Shown here in pieces: positions 589-48,453 of a DNA stretch of 64,000 nt. The notes below the pieces were generated by a model. It searched no databases and was not told where the DNA came from. It saw nothing but the letters and a program-made list of their open reading frames with translations. The stretch is from the NCBI GenBank assembly GCA_025558095.1, contig JAIVFI010000001.1, positions 992,001 through 1,056,000 on the forward strand, in the 5' to 3' direction. A program made the translations under genes and the position numbers. The DNA is from Hyaloraphidium curvatum SAG 235-1. Taxonomy: Eukaryota; Fungi; Monoblepharomycota. The stretch's first letter is position 1. The number at the start of each line of letters is the position of its first letter.

Positions 589-689
589 CGAGCCCGTTCT
601 ATACCATTGGATGTACAGACTTCCCTCATGAACTATTCCCGCTGCTTCATTCTTTTACCGTCTTTGACGTAACGTCTTGCCGATCTTGC

Positions 690-1064
690 CGTCCTGCCGC
701 GTCGAAACCCCGACCGTGCACGTGCGGGAGAGCGAGGATTCCAGTGCGAGCCGAAGCCCGCGCCGGTTTCAACGACACTCTCCCCGCCCGAAGGCTCCTC
801 GGGGCGCCAGGCCGGCGCCCTTACCCCGTGCCGATCGTGGCCCTTGGTCCTTGTCGCCCTGCCACACTGCCGCCTTGAACCCCGATCGTGCACGTGCGGG
901 AGGGCGAGTATTCCAGCGCGAGCCGAAGCCCGCGCCGGTCTCAACGACACTCTCCCGCCCGAAGGCTCCTCGGGACACCAGGCCCAACAACCCCTCCTCG
1001 CCCTAAGACTCCTCGGGGCGCCAGGCTGGCGACCCTTACCCCGTGCCGATCGTGGCCCTCGCTT
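690..1064. repeat. ~175-bp tandem duplication inside repeat copy 1
   Basis: The unit 'aaccccga(c/t)cgtgcacgtgcgggag...ccgaagcccgcgccggt...cttaccccgtgccgatcgtggccct' occurs twice. Confidence 0.9.
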
Positions 1065-1144
1065 CTTGTCGTCCTGCCGCCCTGGCGCCTAGTCGTCCTG
1101 CCGCCCTGGCGCCTTGCCGTCTTGACGCCTTGCCGACTTGCCGT
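1065..1144. repeat. Degenerate octamer array, CTTGCCGY-like, about 10 units
   Basis: cttgtcgt cctgccgc cctggcgc ctagtcgt cctgccgc cctggcgc cttgccgt cttgacgc cttgccga cttgccgt. The counterpart (GGCAAGGC)n is at ~48184-48230. Confidence 0.85.
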
Positions 1145-2565
1145 GCCTGGGACCTGCGAGGGAACGATGTACAGCGCCGCGCAGGCAGAGGGGACAGGCA
1201 GGCCCGGAGAGCAGTGGCGGACGGCGTCGTCAAACGACCCGCGCGCTTAGTGCTGCACCGAGGTGCTCGGGCTTTGGCCCGTCTCCCGCACCTGCCCGCC
1301 CCCCACCTGCCGGGCAGAAGCCGGCCCCGCAGCCAGCGCCGAAGCGCCGTCCGGAGACCGGCCTCGGAGAACCCGGGCGGATGCGGCCGCCTGGGCACGG
1401 GCTCCGGCAGCACCAAGGCCGCCCTCCGAAGAGTGAGCCCGGCCGGGTCCGCACCGGACCCGGGTCCCCGTTCCCGCTCTGCGCAGCGCCGCCGCCTTGA
1501 TGTCCACCAGCCTTGCTCGAGGAACGGGCCAGCGCGCACTCACCTCGCATGCATCTGCCACCTCTGCACCAGGGAGCTCGTGGGCCGTCGGAGGCTTGGC
1601 CGCGGCTCCGAAGAGACCACCGGCTGCCGCCCCACCACAAGGGTGCTCCCGGGGTTGTACCCCCTCTCTCGCAGCCCGGCGAGCCCCCTGGTCGCCCCGC
1701 GGTACGCCGGCGGCGGAGAGCAGCATGCACCGCCCGCCGGCGCCGGCATTCGGGGGTTGCCGGATGGGTGCGGCAGCTTTGGCGCCGGCTCCGGCCATCC
1801 GGCCTCTCGAGGAGCCGGCGCCGGGGCCGCACCCGCCCGGACCCCCGAACCTGCCTCCCCCGCCCGCGCCGCCGTCCAATCGGGTGTTTCCGATGCAGCG
1901 ACAGCGCGGGCACGCGTGCACCCGGCGCCCCGCGGTCCCGCCGGCCGCCCGATGCCGCCCGCGCGCGAGACGCCGTCCCAAACAATGGGCCGTGCGCGGG
2001 CGCGGGAGCAGCTGCGGCCCCGCCGCGCCGCACGGCTGTCTGCATTACTGCAGGCAGCCGGCGGGCGCGGCGGCGGGCCGGGCTGGCGGCGTGGCGCGGG
2101 CGGGGAGTGATTGTAGTGGGGTTCCGGATGCATAGTCTCAGATTGGGATGCCGCCGCCTTATATGTACCTTCAACCCTAGCTCTAACCTAGCGGGCCGCC
2201 GTCCGGCATCCGAATCCGGCGCATCGTGCCGCCCTGTGCGCTCTCCGCGGGTCGCGGGGCCTCAAGCAATTACATTCGGCCGCACAGCGGAGATACCGCC
2301 GTGGGCGCCTGCCCGCCGTAGCGGGAGACAGGCGACAGAATGCCATGTTTGCGATCACGCGGTACTTGCTCGTGGCGCCTTTTGGAGCTGTACGTGGCCG
2401 GAGGAGCCCGATGAGTAGTCGGTTCGCTGCTTGCCTCTTCAGAATTGACGGCAGAACGGGCCGACTCCCTCGCGTGCCGCGGCGGACGCCGTTTCGAGGG
2501 CCAGAAGGGTTGTCCAACTAGTCTGTTCAAGAATGCACTGCTCCGCGACAATCATTTCCCGTGAT

Positions 2566-3646
2566 TTAAGCCCGCGCCCGAGGCAAAGCCGGCCTCCCGT
2601 CCCCCTTCTGGCCCTCCCTCGCATCTTTCCCCTCCGCGCCCCGCTCGCCGTCCTCGTCGACGATGGGGACGTACACCGGCGGCCGCGAGAAATGGTCCAG
2701 CGCCTTTTCCAGCTCGTCCAGCGTGCCCTCGATCCTCCTGCGCCGCGCCTTCATGGCCAGCGTGTCCACGACGATGGGCATGCGCGAGAGCTCGTCGATG
2801 AGCCGGTCCTGCTCTGCGAACGCGGCACCGCGTCAACACATCCGTGCTGCATCACAACGAGAAACCCACTTCGGCGGAGGTACTCGAGCGTCTCGAGCCG
2901 TTCCTCCTCGGGCATCACCGCAAAACCGGGCGGGATGGCGCGGATCCGCCGGCGCTCGGCGAGCTCCTCCTCCCGCCTGCGCTCCTCCCGGGCCCACTCG
3001 TCCTTGCGCTTCGTCAGACTGGCGGGAGATGTGAGCTTTTTCGTCGGCGGAGGTAAGCGGAGCCTGGAGCAACCCACTAGGCCGGAATCTGCCCCGGAAA
3101 CGTCGGTATCGACGCCGTCCGGCCGTTCGACTGGCCCTTGCCCGACTGAATTGACACGAAGGCGTCAGCTGTCGCCGCCGTAGCTGGAAGGGCGGGGCGG
3201 CCCACCTTCAGCGGCGTCTCCTTTGCTCTCGCCGCGTTGAGCCCCACGTAGTCCACCGCCGGCCGCCCCTGCGCGCACGCGGCCCGGGCCCTGCACCCGG
3301 CCGCGCAGCACGGACACACCCCGTGGTCCTCCTCCCCTGCCGCTTTCTGTGGCGCCCCTGTGGCCGCCCCCAGTTCGCGGGCCCCCTTGGTCCCCCGCGT
3401 GTCGACGCGCGCCGGCACGCCCTCGAACTCGCGCAGCCTGAACGGCCGCGGCTTCGGCGCCGCGTCCTCCCTTTTCTTTGTTTGCACCGCGCGCTCGAGC
3501 TCGCGCAGCCGCGCGCGGTTGCGCCGGTCGAAGTCCTCGCCGCCCGCGCGCCGCCGCTCCGTCAGCGCGAGCCCGCCGATGTCCGACAGCAGCCGCGCGA
3601 CCGCCGCGCCCGAGAGCTCCTGCCGCAGCCGCTTCTTGGCGTCCAT
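2566..3646 (-). CDS. ENKD1: Enkurin domain-containing protein (ENKD1-like); 2 introns
   Basis: Spliced protein reads DFDRRNRARLRELE...PFRLREFEGVPARV...GQIPAYLTKRKDEW...IPPGFAVMPEEERLETLE...MPIVVDTLAMKARRRRIEGTLDELEKALDHFSRPPVYV, the enkurin C-terminal signature. Confidence 0.85.
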
Positions 3647-4649: not shown

Positions 4650-6094
4650 ATGGAGCTGCGGGACGCGTGGCGCAAAGCAAAGGACGCGCTCGTCCGCGAG
4701 CTCGGCGGCGGCGAGGTGCCCGGCGAGCCCGCGGAGCCCCCCGCGAAGCGCCGCCGCGCCGAAGCTGTCCCGGACAGGGGCCCCGCCTCCAACACTGGTG
4801 GGCTGCCCTGCTTCCCCCTGCCGAATCATTATATCGATCTCTCAATTGTCCCCAATCAGCATACTACGCGTCCTGGCAGCTGGACCTGTGGCGCCGCACG
4901 CTCGCCGCCCTCTCCGCGGACCCGCCCGACGCCGAAGCCGCCCGCTCGGGCGCCGCCGCGCTGCTCGAGGCCGAGTGGCTGGAGCTCCACTCGCGATACT
5001 ACAAGGACGTCTCGGCGGCCACCAGGCGCGCGTACGCGGACGCGGCGCTGTGCGGGGCGCTGTGCGCTTCTCTCCCCCTGGTGGGCGAAACTCCGGAAGG
5101 GGAGGAAGGGGTGGTGAGGGCCAAGGAGGCGATCGGGATGCTGGACGATGCGCTGGTCATGGTCGGCAGGCCGCGGGGCGACAGACTCGTGGACGACCTC
5201 GTGGAGGCGCTCGAGGGTCTGCTGGAGCGCGAACAGCCCCCGGTACGGACCCCGGCGTCCTCCTTCAGCATCGGCGACCCGCCTCCCATGGACCTCACCC
5301 GCCCCGTGCGGCGGCTGGACAAGCCCATGTCTCTGTCGGCCTTTGCCGCCCACGTCGCGGGGCCGTGCACCCCGTTCGTCGTCTCTGGCCTGCTGGACCA
5401 CTGGCCCGCGCTCTCGGACCGGCCGTGGTCCGACCTCGGCTACTTCGAGAAACTGGTCGGGCGGCATCGTCGCGTGCCCGTGGAGCTCGGCGGGCGCTAC
5501 ACCGACGACGACTGGGCCCAAAAGATCATTCCGTTCGGCGAGTTCCTGGACGACTACGTGGTCGGCGGCGGGCGGAGCAGCCCCGGCCCCGACCGCGACG
5601 GGATCGAGCTCCGGCAGGGCTACCTCGCTCAGCACGACCTGATGGGGCAGATCCCGCGGCTGCGGGCGGACGTGGCGGTGCCCGACTACGCGTTTGCGAT
5701 CGGCGCCTCGGACGCCTCGGACCGGCCCCCGCCGGACCCGATCGTCAACCTCTGGTTCGGCCCCGCGGGCACCGTCTCCCCCGCGCACACGGACCCGCAC
5801 CACAACCTGTACGCGCAGGTCGCCGGTCACAAGTACGCGCGCCTCTTCGCGCCCTCCCAGGCGGAAAGGCTGTACCCCGCGGGCGGGATCATCTCCAACA
5901 CGTCGCGTGTGGACGTCGAGGACCCCGACCTCGCGGAGCACCCGCTGTTTGCCGGGGCAGAGTACGAGGAGGCGGTGCTCGCGCCGGGGGACCTGCTGTT
6001 CATACCCAAAGGGTGGTGGCACTACCTGCGCAGCCTGACGGTGTCGTGCAGCGTGTCATTCTGGCTGCCCGATGCGGTTGGGGAGGGGGGTTAG
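4650..6094 (+). CDS. KDM8: JmjC cupin-like dioxygenase, JMJD5/KDM8-like; 1 intron
   Basis: Motifs RRVPVELGGRYTDDDWAQK, GYLAQHDL, NLWFGPAGTVSPAHTDPHHNLYAQVAGHKY, and LAPGDLLFIPKGWWHY (HxD...H iron triad). Confidence 0.9.
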
Positions 6095-6257
6095 CGGGCG
6101 GTGCTGCCTGCGGCGGATCGGGGGACGATTCGAGGATTTCGACCCCCGCGGGCAATCGGGCTGGTGCCGACGCGGCATCTGTGCGGCCTGCTGAGGCGGC
6201 AGGGGGTAATCATGGCCTGGGGCGCAATGAAGAGTACCTGTGTGTCGGATGGAAGGC

Positions 6258-6277
6258 GGGGGGGGGGGGGGGGGGGG
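6258..6277. repeat. G20 homopolymer
   Basis: Twenty consecutive G bases. Confidence 0.95.
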
Positions 6278-6667
6278 CGATCGCAGGCCTGACCTCCCAG
6301 AAGTGCGGGGGGCGTTTGTTTACGCGCTTTTGTTGTGCTTCGTGACGCGGCAGTCCGGACCATTTTCTCCGCCGGTGGCGACGCGGCAGCCGGCTTGGCA
6401 CGCGCCAACGTGCCGGACGCGACCATCCATCAGTCGCAGCGAGTCCAGCCGCCGATCGCCGCGTTGCCCCGCGATCTCCGGTGCTGCGGTGGTCCCGGGG
6501 CGGCAGACGTTCTGGACACGACCGGTTGTGTTTTCACCAGCCGGACGCCCAGCCCGTCTCCTCTAGCACGTCGGCCGGGGGTGCCTGCCGGCGCGAGCAC
6601 CAGCGCGGCGAGGAGCGCGGCGAGGAGCAGCGGGCGGACGGCCGGCCGGAGCCGCGCGCCGCCGCCA

Positions 6668-7532
6668 TGCCGAAGCGCAAGCCGGGCCCCGCCGGCATGA
6701 GGGCGCGCGCCGACGCGGCCGCCGTGCCGCCTCCCCGCGCGCCGACGCCGCCGCCCGCAGCGGTCGCCGCGCCGTACCCGCTGCCGACGCGGGACGCTGA
6801 CCCGGGCGGCGTGTCGCCCCGCAGGCGGTGGGTTGCCGCCCCTCCACGCCGGCCCCGTCTAACCCTGGCCGGGCCCCCCCCAAACCGCCCCTATCATCCT
6901 CCCTAACCTCTCTAACCGCCGCCGCCTAACTGCCGCCTTCCGCCGCCCGCCCGCCGGCTCCGGCCCCCCCCCCCCCCGTCCCCCACCCAACCATCACCCG
7001 CCGCCCCTCCAGCAAGGGCCTCCCGCGCCGCGCTGCCGCAAAGGACGACTCGCGCTCGGGCGTCGTGCTCAACATCCTGCCGCTGCCAGACGCCGCGTGC
7101 TGGTGCGGCATCCGCTCGGTCGTCGGCCAGGACGCCTCGGCGCTGCTGCACACGCACATGCGCCGCAGGGCGCCCCGCCGCGCGGACCTCGCCGCATCGC
7201 AGGCCTCGTCGGCCGGCAGCATCGACGGCTCCGTCTCCGACTCGGAGAGCGTCTCGAGCGGCGCCTCGTACGGCCGCAGCACTGCCAGCCGCGCCTCGGC
7301 GCTGCCCACGCCGCCGCTCAACGGCCACGCCGAGCCCCCCGGCACCCCGGCGCACAACCACCACGACGCGTCCTCGGACGCCGACAAGCGCTCGCCGCGG
7401 CACCTGCGCACCGACTCCAAGATGGACCTCGGCCAGCTCACGCCGCCAAACTCGTCCCCCACCTCGCCGTCGGTCGACCTGCCGCTGCTCCTGCGCCTGC
7501 CGGCCAGGAACGCGCGCGCCGCGAGGCGCTGA
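6668..7532 (+). CDS. Hypothetical low-complexity protein; probable intron ~6828-7011
   Basis: ATG at 6668 (MPKRKPGP...), a GTGGGT donor, CTAAC motifs and a CCTCCAG acceptor. The downstream exon has strong GC3 codon bias. No recognisable domain. Confidence 0.4.
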
Positions 7533-38171: not shown

Positions 38172-38431
38172 CACTCACCAGATGGAGGACGTGAAAAACC
38201 GCAGAATTTGCATGACGAAAAGATCGTATCTTCCTTGAAACGCTACATGGTGTTTTTTCCTTCGGTATCTCCCTGGCATCCAACGCAACCGTGATTAGTC
38301 TATACCCGTCCCTCTCCTTTTCGTGTGCAATCATCAGAGGTAAGCAAATCGTCACTGATTGGGGAACCGCGCGTGAGATCGATTGCTTGCCAAGCAGCAC
38401 GCATGCAGAAGGCCGACGCACCTTGGTCTCT

Positions 38432-41400
38432 TCACGACCTTTTGGCACCGCCCTCCATCTTGGCCTTGACGCTCCCCTGGGCCACCTGCCCCGCGTACTC
38501 GGCTTCCGCGGGGGCCTCGGCGTAGGCATCCGCGCCCCACTGCTTCTCGGGCACCCTGCGCTCGACGTGGTGCTTGTCGCCGCTCCTGCCGCGCCCGCGC
38601 CTGCCGCCGCGGTCCGCGTACTCGCCGCGCGCCTGGCCAGCCATCCACCCGTCCGCGTCGCCGGCCTCGTCGTGCGACGGAGGCGTCCCGGCGCGGTACC
38701 CGCCCCTGGACGGCCCCGTGGTGCGGCCCTTGGACCGCGCGCGGGCCGAGGGGTGGTGGGCGACCGGCTCCGCCGAGGCGAGGTGCGCGGCCTCGTCGAG
38801 CGAGTCCACCATGGTGACGCTGGTGCTGCTGCGCTCCATGGGGTACAGGCCGGGGGGCATGTCGGGGTGGGCGGCGGCGCGCAGGGGCCCGCGGAAGCCG
38901 TCCATCCCGTCCGCGGGGCGGCCGCCGGCGGGGTCGACGCCCGAGGACGCGCTGCTGTGCGGGCTGTTGGCGCGGAACGAGACGATGGCGGGGTCGATGA
39001 AGGCGCGGCCTTCGCGGGGCCCGCGGGCGGGGACGCCCTGCTGTCCGGGGTGCGCGCCGGGGTGCGCCTGCGGCGGGTATCCGTGCATGGGCACGCCGCC
39101 GGGGAAGCCGTGGCCGCCCGGGTGCCCGCCCGCAGGGAACCGCCCCGTCTTTTCCATCCACGCGCGCTCCATGGTCCAGCGGCGGATGTTCTTGAGCATG
39201 CCCAGCACGCTGCCGTCGTCGGGGTACTCCATGCCCGTGTCGTAGCAGAGCTGCCAGACCTCGGTCACGACCGCCTCGACTTCGGCCCACCGCCTGCGCT
39301 CCGCCTCGGCCTCGGCCGAGCGGCGCACCTGGTACCACCCCTCGAGGTGCTCCAGCCAGTTGCGCTCGATCTGGGTGTAGAGCATCTGGCGGTACTGCTG
39401 CTCGGTCATGAGGCGGTCCGAGATGAAGTGCTGCAGGAAGGTGCCGGTGGACGACATGGGGGTCGGCGGCTGCGTGGGCGAGGGCGGGGGGAGGCCGGCG
39501 GCGTAGCCCTGCGGCGGGGGTGCGGGGGGGTATGCGCCCGAGGGCACCGGAGGCGGGGGACCGGTCTTCTGCGCCATCATCGGGGGAGGGTGAGGGGGCA
39601 GGGCGCCGGTGGGGGAGAAGGGGCCGGGGAAGGGAGCGCCTGCGTAGTAGGGGGTGGGGGAGAAGGCGGTGGGAGGCGGGTGGCGAGCGCGGCCCATGTC
39701 GGCCTCGGTGCCGGCGGGAGCGACGGGCGCCTGCGCCGCGAACGCGCCGGGCGGGGGAGCCGAGAGCGTGGGCACGACGCCTGCGTCGGGGTATTGCGCG
39801 GCGGCCTCCGAAACCGGGTCCTCCTGCAGGATGATGTCGGCGTCGGTGACCTCCTCGAGCTCGTCGGGCACGGCCGCGGGCGACGCGCTGGTGACCTCGA
39901 ACTCCTTGGCCTCGAGGTTCCACGTGCGCGTGGGGCTGCGGCTCTCGGACCTCGTCGTCACGGCGTCCTCCTCAGCGTCGGTCGCTTCGGGCGACGCCTT
40001 GCGCGGCGACGGCACCGACTTGGAACGCTTGCGCGACGACTGCGGGGGAGGCGCGGCGGCGGCGGTTTCCGGCTCAGGCTCCGAGGCGGAGGCCGGCACG
40101 TCGGGCGTCTGCGTCGCAGCGGCGGCGGTCGGCACGGCTTCCGGCTGCGGGGCGGCCTCGGGCTGCGCGGCCTTGGCCTCGGCTTCGGCCGGCGGCTGCT
40201 CGGCGGCGGCGGCGGCGGGCGCATCGGCGGGCGGGGTGGGCGACGGCACGGCCGGCGGCGTGGCCGACTTGCGCGCCTTGGCGTCCGCCTTGGCCGCCTT
40301 GGTCGGCTTGGACTTGCGCGGGAGCTGCGGCGCGTCGCCGTTGGCTGGCGAGGGGGGCTGCTGCTCCGCCGATGCATCCTGCTGCCTGGCGTTGGCCGAC
40401 GACTTGCGCTCGCGCGGCTTCTTGGCCTCCTTGACGGCGGCGTGCTCCTCGGCAGCGGGCGCGGGCGCATCGGGGACCGGCGAGGGTGCCTGCTCGGCCG
40501 TGGGCTGCGCGGCGTCCGCGCGCTGCTGCTCGTCGGCGGGCGCGGGCGCAGGAGAAGGCGGCGCGGGTGCGGCCTCGGGCGCGTCGGCGGGCTGCGGGGT
40601 GGCGGCAGATTCGGTCCCGTTGTCCGGCTGCGGGGTCGGCGTCGGCGTGGGGGCCGATGCGACCGGCGACTGGGCGGGCCCGGCGGCGGCCGCGGCTGCG
40701 GCGGCGGCGGTGCGCCTCGCCCAGATGGTCATGATCGGGGTTTCGAAGTCGCCGAACATCTGCATGTAGCTGGGGTCCCAGTTGCCGTCGGCCACGAGCG
40801 TCTTTTTCTCCTCGTCCGTGAAGCCGGGGCAGCGGATGAAGACCTTGAACACGACCTCGCAGAACATGTCCGAGACCTTGCGCAGCGCGGCGCGCTGCGA
40901 CGTGTCCGAGGTCAGGTGCGAGTACAGGCACTCCATGGAGCGGCGCGCGAGCTCGTAGACCAGGTCGCGCTGCGCGACGAGCTGCGCGGGCGGCTCCTGG
41001 GCGGCGTAGGGCGGGAAGAGGTGCCACGGGAAGAGCTTGACGACGGCCATGGCCATGATGAACGGGCGGTCCATGTGGCGGTTGGTCTGCCCTTGCTGGT
41101 AAAGGAAGGGGAGGCGGGACTCGCGGTCAGCAGAGGCAACTAGGCGGGAAAGCCGGGGGGACGCACGATGGGGTCCTTGCAGATGCGCAGCAGGCCGTCC
41201 ACCGACTCGCGGGTCACGTATGTCTGCTGCGCCTCGGGCACGCCGCGCACGTAGGGCGGGAAGATGGCCGCCAGCAGGTCCTGGTACGAGGCGCGCTGCG
41301 GGTGCAGCGTGGTGCAGAACTCGCGGTCGAGGCGCTCGTCCTTTGTGCGCAGCACCTCGTCGGCGTGTGCGGCGTCGAGCAGCACGGCGTACACGACGGG

Positions 41401-45678: not shown

Positions 45679-48453
45679 GACGGCGAGCCGGGCGCGGAGG
45701 GGAAAGACGCGAGGGAGCGGGATAAGGGGGACGGGAGGCCGGCTTTGCCTCGGCGCGGGCTTGAATCACGGGAGATGATTGTCGCGGAGCAGGCGTTCTT
45801 GAAGAGACTAGTTGGACAACCCTTCCGGCCCTCGAAACGGCGTCCGCCACGGCACGCGAGGGAGTCGGCCCGTTCTGCCGTCAATTCTGAAGAGCCAAGC
45901 AGCGACCCGACTGCTCATCGGGCTCCTCCGGCCACGTACAGCTCCAAAAGGCGCCGCGAGCAAGTACCGCGTAATCGCAAACATGGCATTCTGTCGCCTG
46001 TCTCCCGCTCCGGAAGGCGGGTGCCCACGGCGGTATCTCCGCTGTGCGGCCGAATGCAATTGCCAGAGCCCCCGCGACCCGCGGAGGGCGCGTAGAGCGA
46101 CACGATGCGCAGGATTCGGATGCCGGGCGGCGGCCCGCTAGGTTAGAGCTAGGGTTGAAGGTACATAAGGCGGCGGCATCCCGATCTGAGACTGTGCATC
46201 CGGGTTCAGAGCGACCTTACGCGTCTCGAGGACCAGCGCCGCCTCGCGGCTCTGATTGCCTTGCAACCCACCACTTCCGCTGGTCTGGAGCGCCGCAAGC
46301 GGCTCGTCCAGGCGCAGGACGGCCTGTCGGCTTTCCTGACTGCCTCTCCCGCGCTGCTTGCCAACCACATTCGCAACAACTTTTTCCGCTTACTTGTACG
46401 CTTCCGGCTTTGCCTCCCGCTCCTGCACGAGGCCGACTACCCTGGTCTTTCCTTGCCCTGCCGGCGGGGCTGCAAGCGATCGGCCATGTCGCTGACGGGG
46501 GAGCACGCGTTCTCGGGCTGCTATGGCCGGGATCTCTTCAGTCCTGGTCACGACGACATTTGCGCGGCCATCCGCGCGGCGCTTCGCTCCATCCCGCTCC
46601 TCCGCGTGCACCCCATGCCGCCAAACCTCCTTGCGCATGGCTACGAGACTGTCACCCCGCCCACGCCTGCGGATGCTGGCCGCCTTGGCGACGTTCTCAT
46701 CACGCACCGCGAAACCCGGAAACGGTGGTTGCTCGAGATCAAGACCCTCACCTCTATGGCCCATTTGCACACGGGCCTGGTCTTCTCGGTCCCGGGCCAC
46801 GCAGTCGAACGGCGGGTCGAGGCCGCCAGGAAGGACTACTCCCGTTTCGTCTTCAACGCCAACTTCTACCCTCTGATCGTGCTTGCTTTTGATTCGTACA
46901 GCGCTGTCTCTGCCACTTTCTCGCGCTTCTCCTCGGAGATGGGGCGCGTCCAGTATCCCGGGATCGTCGGCCGCGATGGGCAGCCCGTGGACCTCGATGG
47001 CCTTTACTCTCGTTTTGTGCGGCGCTTCCGCGAACGGATCGCGGTGGCCTGGGCTCTTGGCGTCGCGGCCCAACTCCAACACTGGCTTCAGCTGTGCACC
47101 GAAGCCGCCGCTGTCAACGCTCCGGCCCCCGCGCCGGTCGCATTTGGTTTGAATGTAGATGAGGAGCTGATTCTTGGGGCGTAGGGGGATTTCTAAGTGT
47201 ACGGTGGGATTGCTAGCTCCTCATTACATACATACCGGCGAACCCCATCACTCCCCGCCCCGGTTGGGACGGCGTCTCGCGCGCGGGCGGCATCGGGCGG
47301 CCGGCGGGGCCGCGGGGCGCCGGGTGCACGCACGCCCGCGCTGTCGCTGCATCGGAAAAACCCGATCGGACGGCGGCGCGGGCGGGGGAGGCGGGTTCGG
47401 GGGTCCGGGCGGGTGCGGCCCGGGCGCCGGCTCCTCGAGAGGCCGGATGGCCCGAGCCGGCGCCTAAGCTGCCGCATCCGTCCGGCAAACCCCGAATGCA
47501 GGCGGCGGCGGCGGGCTGTGCATGCTGCACGCCGCCGTCGACGTCCCGCGGGGCGACCAGGGGGCTCGCCGGGCTGCGGGGGGTACAACCCCGGGAGCAC
47601 CCTTGTGGTGGGGCGGCAGCCGATGGTCTCTTCGGAGCCGCGGCCAAGCCTCCGACGCCCGGCGAGCTCCCTGGTGCAGAGATGGCAGATGCATGCGAGG
47701 TGGGTGCGCGCTGGCCCGTAGCTGACCTCCCTCCCCAACCCCACAGGTCCTCGAGCAAGGCCGATGGACATCAAGGCGGCGGCGCTGCGCAGAGCGGGAA
47801 CGGGGACCCGGGTCGGGTGCGGACCCGGCCGGGCTCACTCTTCGGAGGGCGGCCTTGGTGCTGCCGGAGCACGTGCCCAGGCGGCCGCATCCGCCCGGGT
47901 TCTCCGAGTTCGGTCGGCGGGCGGCGCTTCGGCGCTGGCCGCGGGTCAGGCTTCCGTCGGGCAGTTGGGGGCGGGCAGGTGCGGGAGACGTGCCAAGCCG
48001 AGCACCTCGGTGCAGCACTAAGCGCACGGGTCGTTGGACGACGCCGTCCGCCACTGCTTCCCGCGCCTGTCTGCTCCCTCTCCATGGAGCTGCGCTGCAC
48101 ACCGTTCTGTTTCCATGTAAGTCACGTTGCACCCCAGTGAAGCCCGGCAGCGCTAACTATCGTTCCCTCGCAGGTCCAAGCATGGCAAGGCGGCAAGGCG
48201 GCAAGGCGGCAGGACAGCAGGGCATCAGGGCGTTAAGGAGCAAGGGCCGCGATCCGCAGCCGGGCACGGGTGCCAGCCGGGCACGGGTGCCAGCCTGGCA
48301 CCCGGTGCGCCTTCGGGCCGGCAGGGTGATGTCGAGACTGGCGCTGGCTTCGGACCGCTCCGGAATCCACGCTCTCCGCACGCGCACGGTCGGGGTTTCG
48401 AGGCGGCAGGGCGGCAAGACACTGATTCGGAAAGACAGTGAAACGAACGAACC
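45679..48453 (+). mobile_element. Dispersed repeat, copy 2 (inverted relative to copy 1), interrupted by an RLE retrotransposon
   Basis: Segments 45679-46203 and 47241-48453 match the reverse complement of 2652-2124 and 2123-644, with indels. Confidence 0.85.
46204..47240 (+). mobile_element. 5'-truncated non-LTR retrotransposon, RLE type (CRE/R2-group-like): zinc knuckle plus PD-(D/E)xK nuclease remnant
   Basis: Absent from copy 1. The frame is open from the first inserted base to the stop at 47184. Protein reads RFRLCLP...CRRGC-x10-H-x4-C...GHDDIC...GRLGDVL...LLEIK. The short 3' UTR ends cattacatacatac. Confidence 0.85.

Follow-up and report, generated by a model that had tools for sequence, protein, structure and literature searches.

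A 1037-bp insert at positions 46204–47240 of a 64,000-nucleotide stretch of the Hyaloraphidium curvatum SAG 235-1 genome (contig JAIVFI010000001.1, positions 992,001 to 1,056,000 of the forward strand; this whole stretch is hereafter the window) is a dead, 5′-truncated daughter copy of a recently active retrotransposon. The parent element is a non-LTR retrotransposon (LTR, long terminal repeat), or long interspersed nuclear element (LINE), bearing a restriction-like endonuclease (RLE), and its family is sequence-directed: it inserts 8 nt (7–9) downstream of the word (T)CTGAGA. Taken as a whole, the observations are best explained if the insert is a truncated copy of a young R2-like LINE that integrates 8 nt past this word, a reading to which we assign a probability of roughly 0.85. 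Our literature searches found no report of H. curvatum retrotransposons or of a CTGAGA target.

The H. curvatum assembly (31.9 Mb in 55 contigs, which are cited below by C numbers) yielded 74 matches by six-frame tblastn, most of them 97–100% identical, and the copies that were compared are 98.9–100% identical to one another. A 1318-codon open frame is present in 13 of the 74 matches, and 20 copies keep the 5′ end. Comparison of the full-length copies gave an element of ~6,943 bp with two open reading frames (ORFs). ORF1 (nt 3–2138, 712 aa, start codon ATG at nt 3) has no Pfam match and is separated by a spacer of 800 nt from ORF2 (1303 aa, ATG near nt 2982), which encodes three N-terminal Cys/His finger-like motifs, a reverse transcriptase (RT), a CCHC motif and an RLE of the PD-(D/E)xK type, and is followed by a short untranslated region (UTR) and a tail, ATTACA(CA)n. 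The window copy corresponds to element positions 5916–6941 at 99.4% identity, with homology beginning at window position 46207. An exact-sequence look-up showed that fragments of ORF2 have been deposited as H. curvatum hypothetical proteins.

The 5′ junctions were read for 47 flanks, a sample of the copies that comprises both truncated and full-length ones. CTGAGA stands just upstream of the junction in 32 of these flanks, compared with a background of 5.5e-5 per position in the window, and at 18 of the 27 distinct sites a T precedes it. For copies with both flanks to compare, the distance from the word to the start of the target-site duplication (TSD) is 8 nt in 11, 7 nt in four and 9 nt in one, such that the offset is 7–9 nt in 16 of the 17 measurable cases, the remaining case being blurred by the A/C tail. 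The insertions all have one orientation relative to this asymmetric word, and no position is conserved in the spacer, in the TSD (4–15 bp long) or beyond. The insert in the window obeys the same rule, with TCTGAGA at 46185–46191, then 8 nt, then ccgg and the insert. Unoccupied sites, namely the paralogous site in the window and the unfilled copies of an LTR family described below, retain TCTGAGA, and the word therefore belongs to the target rather than to the element. An Rfam scan of the window, one full-length copy and four insertion loci found no small-RNA gene as a target.

One site has been used repeatedly. An LTR family with at least 40 copies carries the sequence ctCTGAGAgcccttgg/gacgccc (the slash marks the insertion point), and most of its copies are empty. 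This same LTR nucleotide was struck at least five separate times, the insertions having differing truncation points, tails or extra bases: a head-to-tail pair (C1:231.8–245.8 kb), a full-length copy (C1:515–522 kb), a copy truncated at element position 6806 (C22:168 kb), a copy truncated at 5771 that sits in a diverged LTR and was later amplified as an 11,078-bp tandem (C11), and a probable further case (C32:570.7 kb). The C11 locus (510.5–537 kb, L004–L006) holds the truncated LINE with its LTR context three times over, at intervals of exactly 11,078 bp, which looks like a recent tandem duplication.

The LINE and the LTR family are also nested in both directions (C1:231.8–255.5 kb; C2:163.8–171.0 kb; C43:367.3–377.9 kb; L029, L054, L064 and L068), and LTR elements of ~7–10 kb have inserted in two full-length LINE copies, at element positions ~5946 and ~6098. 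A second apparent hot spot at the LTR end (L029, copy b) was rejected, as there LTR elements had entered LINE copies (C2:163.8–171.0 kb, C43:367.3–377.9 kb).

Could the word be a chance association, or simply reflect the places at which insertions are tolerated, in an RLE element that lacks target specificity, as in HERO? The diverse flanks, the variable TSD lengths and the existence of some copies without the word are what such an element would leave. However, TCTGAGA occurs at 892 sites in the whole genome, so that ~0.001 insertions 8 nt after a TCTGAGA would be expected among 47 random events, as opposed to the ~20 or more observed. Together with the fixed orientation and spacing, and with the repeated strikes at a single LTR nucleotide, this makes non-specific insertion very improbable.

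Several observations do weigh against a word-directed, R2-like element. An exact CTGAGA is missing from about 15 of the 47 flanks. Most of these have, at the same distance, a variant that departs from the word by one or two mismatches (TTGAGA, CTTAGA, CTGAGG, CTGATC, CTGAAT), and four or five (L036, L057, n, t, a) have no clear word. Several TSD edges are ambiguous by 1–3 nt because the tail ends in A/C. As well, the three finger patterns at the N-terminus of ORF2 were recognized by eye, and their Pfam scores fall below threshold.

Separately, the word itself is scarce: the 892 TCTGAGA sites of the genome compare with 1283 for the word reversed and with the ~2000 that base composition would predict, and CTGAGA occurs seven times in the window as opposed to ~23 expected. 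This scarcity could stem from a general avoidance of TGA-containing words or from pressure exerted by the element.

Within the window, the insert lies in one of two copies of a host repeat, which are in inverted orientation and share 92–93% identity across ~2.4 kb (blastn of the window against itself). Copy 2 (45679–48419, plus strand) is filled and split by the insert, while copy 1 (684–2652, minus strand) is empty at 2124/2123, with TCTGAGA at 2142–2136 and an unduplicated ccgg at 2127–2124. Read directly, the minus strand of copy 1 runs ...tgcatccgg/aacccca, and copy 2 runs ...tgcatccgg, then 1037 bp, then aacccca; both junctions are as had been reported in a first-pass annotation of the window, made from the letters alone. 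A whole-genome pattern search places the word of the filled copy at C1:1038185–1038191 and that of the empty paralogue at C1:994136–994142.

The annotation had gone on to propose a new fungal RLE family whose target is this dispersed repeat. That the family is fungal and has no close described relative holds; that the repeat is its target does not. The presence of one filled and one empty copy within the same window is suggestive, and many RLE clades are indeed specific for multicopy targets (PMC4640811). In contrast to what a repeat-specific family would leave, and in the way that the annotation itself had named as refuting its proposal, the 3′ flanks of 30 copies proved unrelated to the window flank (none of the 29 others resembles it) and mostly unrelated to each other, and insertions were found in many unrelated sequences. 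A genome search for the empty site recovered only the two window copies at ≥ 90% identity, along with ~7 further relatives at 71–75% identity that are all uninterrupted across the site, so that among ~9 copies of the repeat a single one is filled. The host repeat is not the target of the family, and specificity for it as the natural site is hardly credible; the repeat was hit because it contains TCTGAGA.

Near the insertion, the filled copy is without ~113 bp that are present in the empty copy (2100–1990), and small indels also distinguish the two. The ORFs of the host repeat have no Pfam match. A reading of the 43 kb between the repeat copies as a giant mobile element was rejected, as this interval holds ordinary genes (JmjC, ribosomal L23, PIG-S, zf-DNL, Tdp1, SYO1). 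Elsewhere in the window, positions 38291–41143 reach a GC content of up to 75% and contain overlapping ORFs of 880–950 codons on both strands, none of them matched in Pfam, which probably reflect either base composition alone or a gene of low complexity.

The filled site can be read base by base on the plus strand. The word (46185–46191) is followed by an 8-nt spacer, ctgtgcat (46192–46199), that runs to the inferred bottom-strand nick and whose length matches the 8 nt (7–9) seen in copies with a measurable TSD. Next come the left copy of a 4-bp TSD, ccgg (46200–46203; single in the empty paralogue), and three extra junction bases, gtt (46204–46206), that are not element-derived, the full-length copies having ctg there. 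The 3′ end of ORF2 (46207–47186, element 5916 to ~6893, 99.4% identical to a full-length copy) covers the thumb/linker, the CCHC motif and the RLE, and ends in a stop codon at 47184–47186. It is followed by a 48-nt 3′ UTR (47187–47234) that ends in ATTACA plus a (CA/TA)n tail, by the right TSD copy, ccgg (47235–47238), and by cg (47239–47240), which is either an indel between the paralogues or untemplated. The tail sequence of the insert is attacatacata, then ccggcg. The same UTR occurs in all 30 copies compared, among which the tail length differs. The first-pass annotation had thus recognized the short UTR and CATA-type tail correctly, and the possible imperfect duplication that it saw is refined here to an exact TSD of 4 bp.

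The frame of the insert is open from its first base, 46204, to the stop at 47184–47186 (326 codons), and the nearest in-frame stop upstream is at 46156–46158 with no ATG in between, as the annotation had it. So too were its CCHC, GHDD and GD...EIK motifs found in this frame, as C-x3-C-x10-H-x4-C at residues 86–106, GHDD at 115–118, GD at 162–163 and LEIK at 176–179. By alignment, profile and structural model, the corresponding positions within 46459–46830 are the CCHC motif at 46459–46521, GHD at 46546–46554, D163 at 46690–46692, E177-I-K179 at 46732–46740 and K208 at 46825–46827.

What kind of protein is this? ORF2 residues 501–718 match Pfam RVT_1 (E = 8e-10). Neither ORF1 nor ORF2 gave a match to Exo_endo_phos, the mark of an apurinic/apyrimidinic endonuclease (APE), even at E values as high as 1, and the window ORF alone has no Pfam match. 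Simple searches placed ORF2 poorly: phmmer against the PDB gave only weak matches to HIV RT, such that a profile was needed to reach R2, and a protein atlas search returned generic RT clusters only. In an alignment of the window ORF with the C-termini of distant relatives (A1), H101, C106, H116 and D163 are invariant, and C90, K208 and Y212 nearly so. The profile made from A1 has a single match in the PDB, the R2 protein 9nl2_A (E = 4.7e-5), which covers the CCHC, RHN and PD...D motifs, and a profile spanning both the RT and the RLE (A2) ranks R2 at the top (1.6e-31), with L1 ORF2p next (1e-20). The AlphaFold (AF2) model of the window ORF has a mean predicted local distance difference test (pLDDT) score of 76, with the nuclease core above 90, and the best six Foldseek matches to this predicted fold are R2Tg, R2Bm and R2Pm. 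These profile and fold matches to R2 RLE regions bear out the first-pass view of an RLE-type element, including the match to RLE C-termini on which that view depended; 5′ truncation by target-primed reverse transcription (TPRT) is likewise supported.

The spacing of the motifs agrees with the consensus for restriction-enzyme-like (REL) endonucleases (PMC12857005), with two deviations, GHD in place of RHD/N and LGD in place of (R/K)PD. Given that GHD and LGD are common to all copies and that the family has clearly been mobile, these substitutions are tolerated. The footprints of TPRT are present as well, in the form of a common 3′ end, many 5′ truncation points and TSDs. All four defining features of the early-branching, R2-group non-LTR retrotransposons with an RLE were found, and the element is placed in that group as a whole rather than in a clade. 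Among 5.8 billion proteins searched, the nearest are unnamed environmental sequences, the best being 44% identical and the others ~30% or less, and cluster look-ups for 18 relatives returned no informative protein names; judged by these sequence comparisons, the family is one without a close described relative. The distant profile matches include proteins with Ulp1 or UCH protease domains. In addition, weak tblastn matches to the RLE region (25–51%) at C7:64978–65467, C17:689841–690092, C35:475175–475570, C18:555155–555463 and C16:156845–157150 suggest that other, older families of RLE retrotransposons are present in the same genome.

The junction between tail and target, 8 nt (7–9) past the word, is the site of the bottom-strand nick in TPRT. 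For R2, complexes caught during TPRT have been solved, and the DNA-binding part holds the upstream DNA. By analogy, the N-terminal fingers of ORF2 may read the word much as R2 reads upstream DNA, the candidate readers being these fingers, another part of ORF2, or ORF1. The RLE would then be placed about one helical turn downstream of the word, where it would nick the bottom strand, and the 3′-OH at the nick would serve as primer for cDNA synthesis, with the ATTACA(CA)n end of the RNA as template. Cleavage of the second strand at a variable distance would give rise to the variable TSDs, and an early stop of reverse transcription to truncated copies such as that in the window. The catalytic residues are intact.

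It is also conceivable that the word is real but is read by a host factor, by local DNA structure or by pairing with the element RNA. No domain with proven DNA specificity was identified in the element, and its 3′ UTR contains ttctaag, a near match to the word. However, this near match differs among active-looking copies (tttctaag versus ttgctaag), the nick is not flanked by conserved bases with which the tail could pair, and a fixed 8-nt offset combined with a strand rule is what would be expected of a protein with separate binding and cutting modules, as in R2. On balance we think that reading of the word by something other than the element's own protein is unlikely. The strictest form of the word-directed reading is a self-contained rule like that of a type IIS enzyme, in which the element would read the asymmetric 7-bp TCTGAGA, cut one strand 8 nt downstream of it and start reverse transcription from that nick; we offer it tentatively, at somewhat short of even odds.

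The ends of individual copies show further variation. One full-length copy (L032/L003, C22:21.4–28.4 kb) ends in ...gctagctcctc without ATTACA(CA)n, yet its 11-bp TSD is clean and the word lies at the usual 8-nt distance, so that priming seems not to depend strictly on the tail. At the 5′ junctions, other copies carry 1–40 extra bases, with 8–40 between the TSD and the element start in full-length copies. Copying from the interior of the element was rejected as a source of these bases, except for a 13-nt repeat of nt 5–17 in L061. In the full-length copies L046:5120–5181, L047, L048 and L049–L063, the shared sequence is preceded by one of three recurring short leaders, attt(t)acccgg, gtccctgaggca or ccccgccccgaga, with unique bases before each. 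The leaders may be subfamily 5′ ends, 5′ transductions or untemplated additions. No ribozyme came up at the element's 5′ end in the Rfam scan described above.

How does the element compare with known RLE systems? R2 (R2Bm, R2Tg, R2Pm; solved structures 8gh6, 9dou, 9nl2) is the nearest by profile and fold in the PDB, and has in common with it N-terminal zinc fingers (finger-like here), an RT, a CCHC motif and a PD-(D/E)xK nuclease in one protein, insertion by TPRT and 5′-truncated copies. In contrast, R2 has one ORF, the RHD/N and (R/K)PD motifs and a single long site in 28S ribosomal DNA, whereas the element described here has two ORFs, GHD and LGD, a word of 6–7 bp that is enough as a target and hence copies genome-wide, and identity between the two is ~10–14%. 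SLACS and CZAR have two ORFs. These belong to the CRE clade (CRE1/2, SLACS, CZAR), which together with the fungal MoTeR, FoTeR and Cnl1 resembles our element in RLE type and REL layout (PMC12857005), and in part in being fungal. The CRE-clade and fungal telomere elements, however, target spliced-leader genes or telomere repeats, and this element targets neither: its sampled flanks are ordinary unique or LTR DNA, with no Rfam match near the sampled insertions.

NeSL/Utopia and HERO are RLE elements with one to three N-terminal fingers; NeSL and Utopia target spliced-leader, U2, tRNA or microsatellite sequences, while HERO is described as mostly non-specific, and some families are not confined to one multicopy target (PMC4640811). 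The RLE and N-terminal fingers are points of likeness, as is the appearance of Ulp1, a hallmark of NeSL, among the distant profile matches; points of difference are the strict, short, non-repetitive word, the fixed offset and the lack of a protease domain in Pfam searches. The element thus fits neither the specificity for multicopy genes or telomeres of R2, CRE/SLACS, NeSL/Utopia and MoTeR/FoTeR nor the non-specific insertion of the HERO type. With type IIS restriction and nicking enzymes the likeness is one of mechanism only, an asymmetric short word and a one-sided cut at a fixed distance; no homology is claimed beyond the PD-(D/E)xK fold, and in this element the nick serves to prime reverse transcription.

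RLE LINEs such as R2 are under development for gene insertion, and open questions about them include how sites are chosen and how specificity evolves. The element described here stands between strictly site-specific and non-specific RLE elements. As a young multi-copy family from an early-diverging fungus, in which dozens of natural insertions document a word and an offset rule, it is a tractable system for tying N-terminal fingers to target choice. If the self-contained rule were true, no RLE LINE seen so far would have a simpler target rule, the few N-terminal fingers would constitute a small module open to mapping and exchange, and the roughly two-fold scarcity of TCTGAGA could have been left by pressure that the element exerted over the long term. 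For the annotation of H. curvatum, the family accounts for ~70 previously unannotated repeats and for fragmentary ‘hypothetical proteins’ of this fungus.

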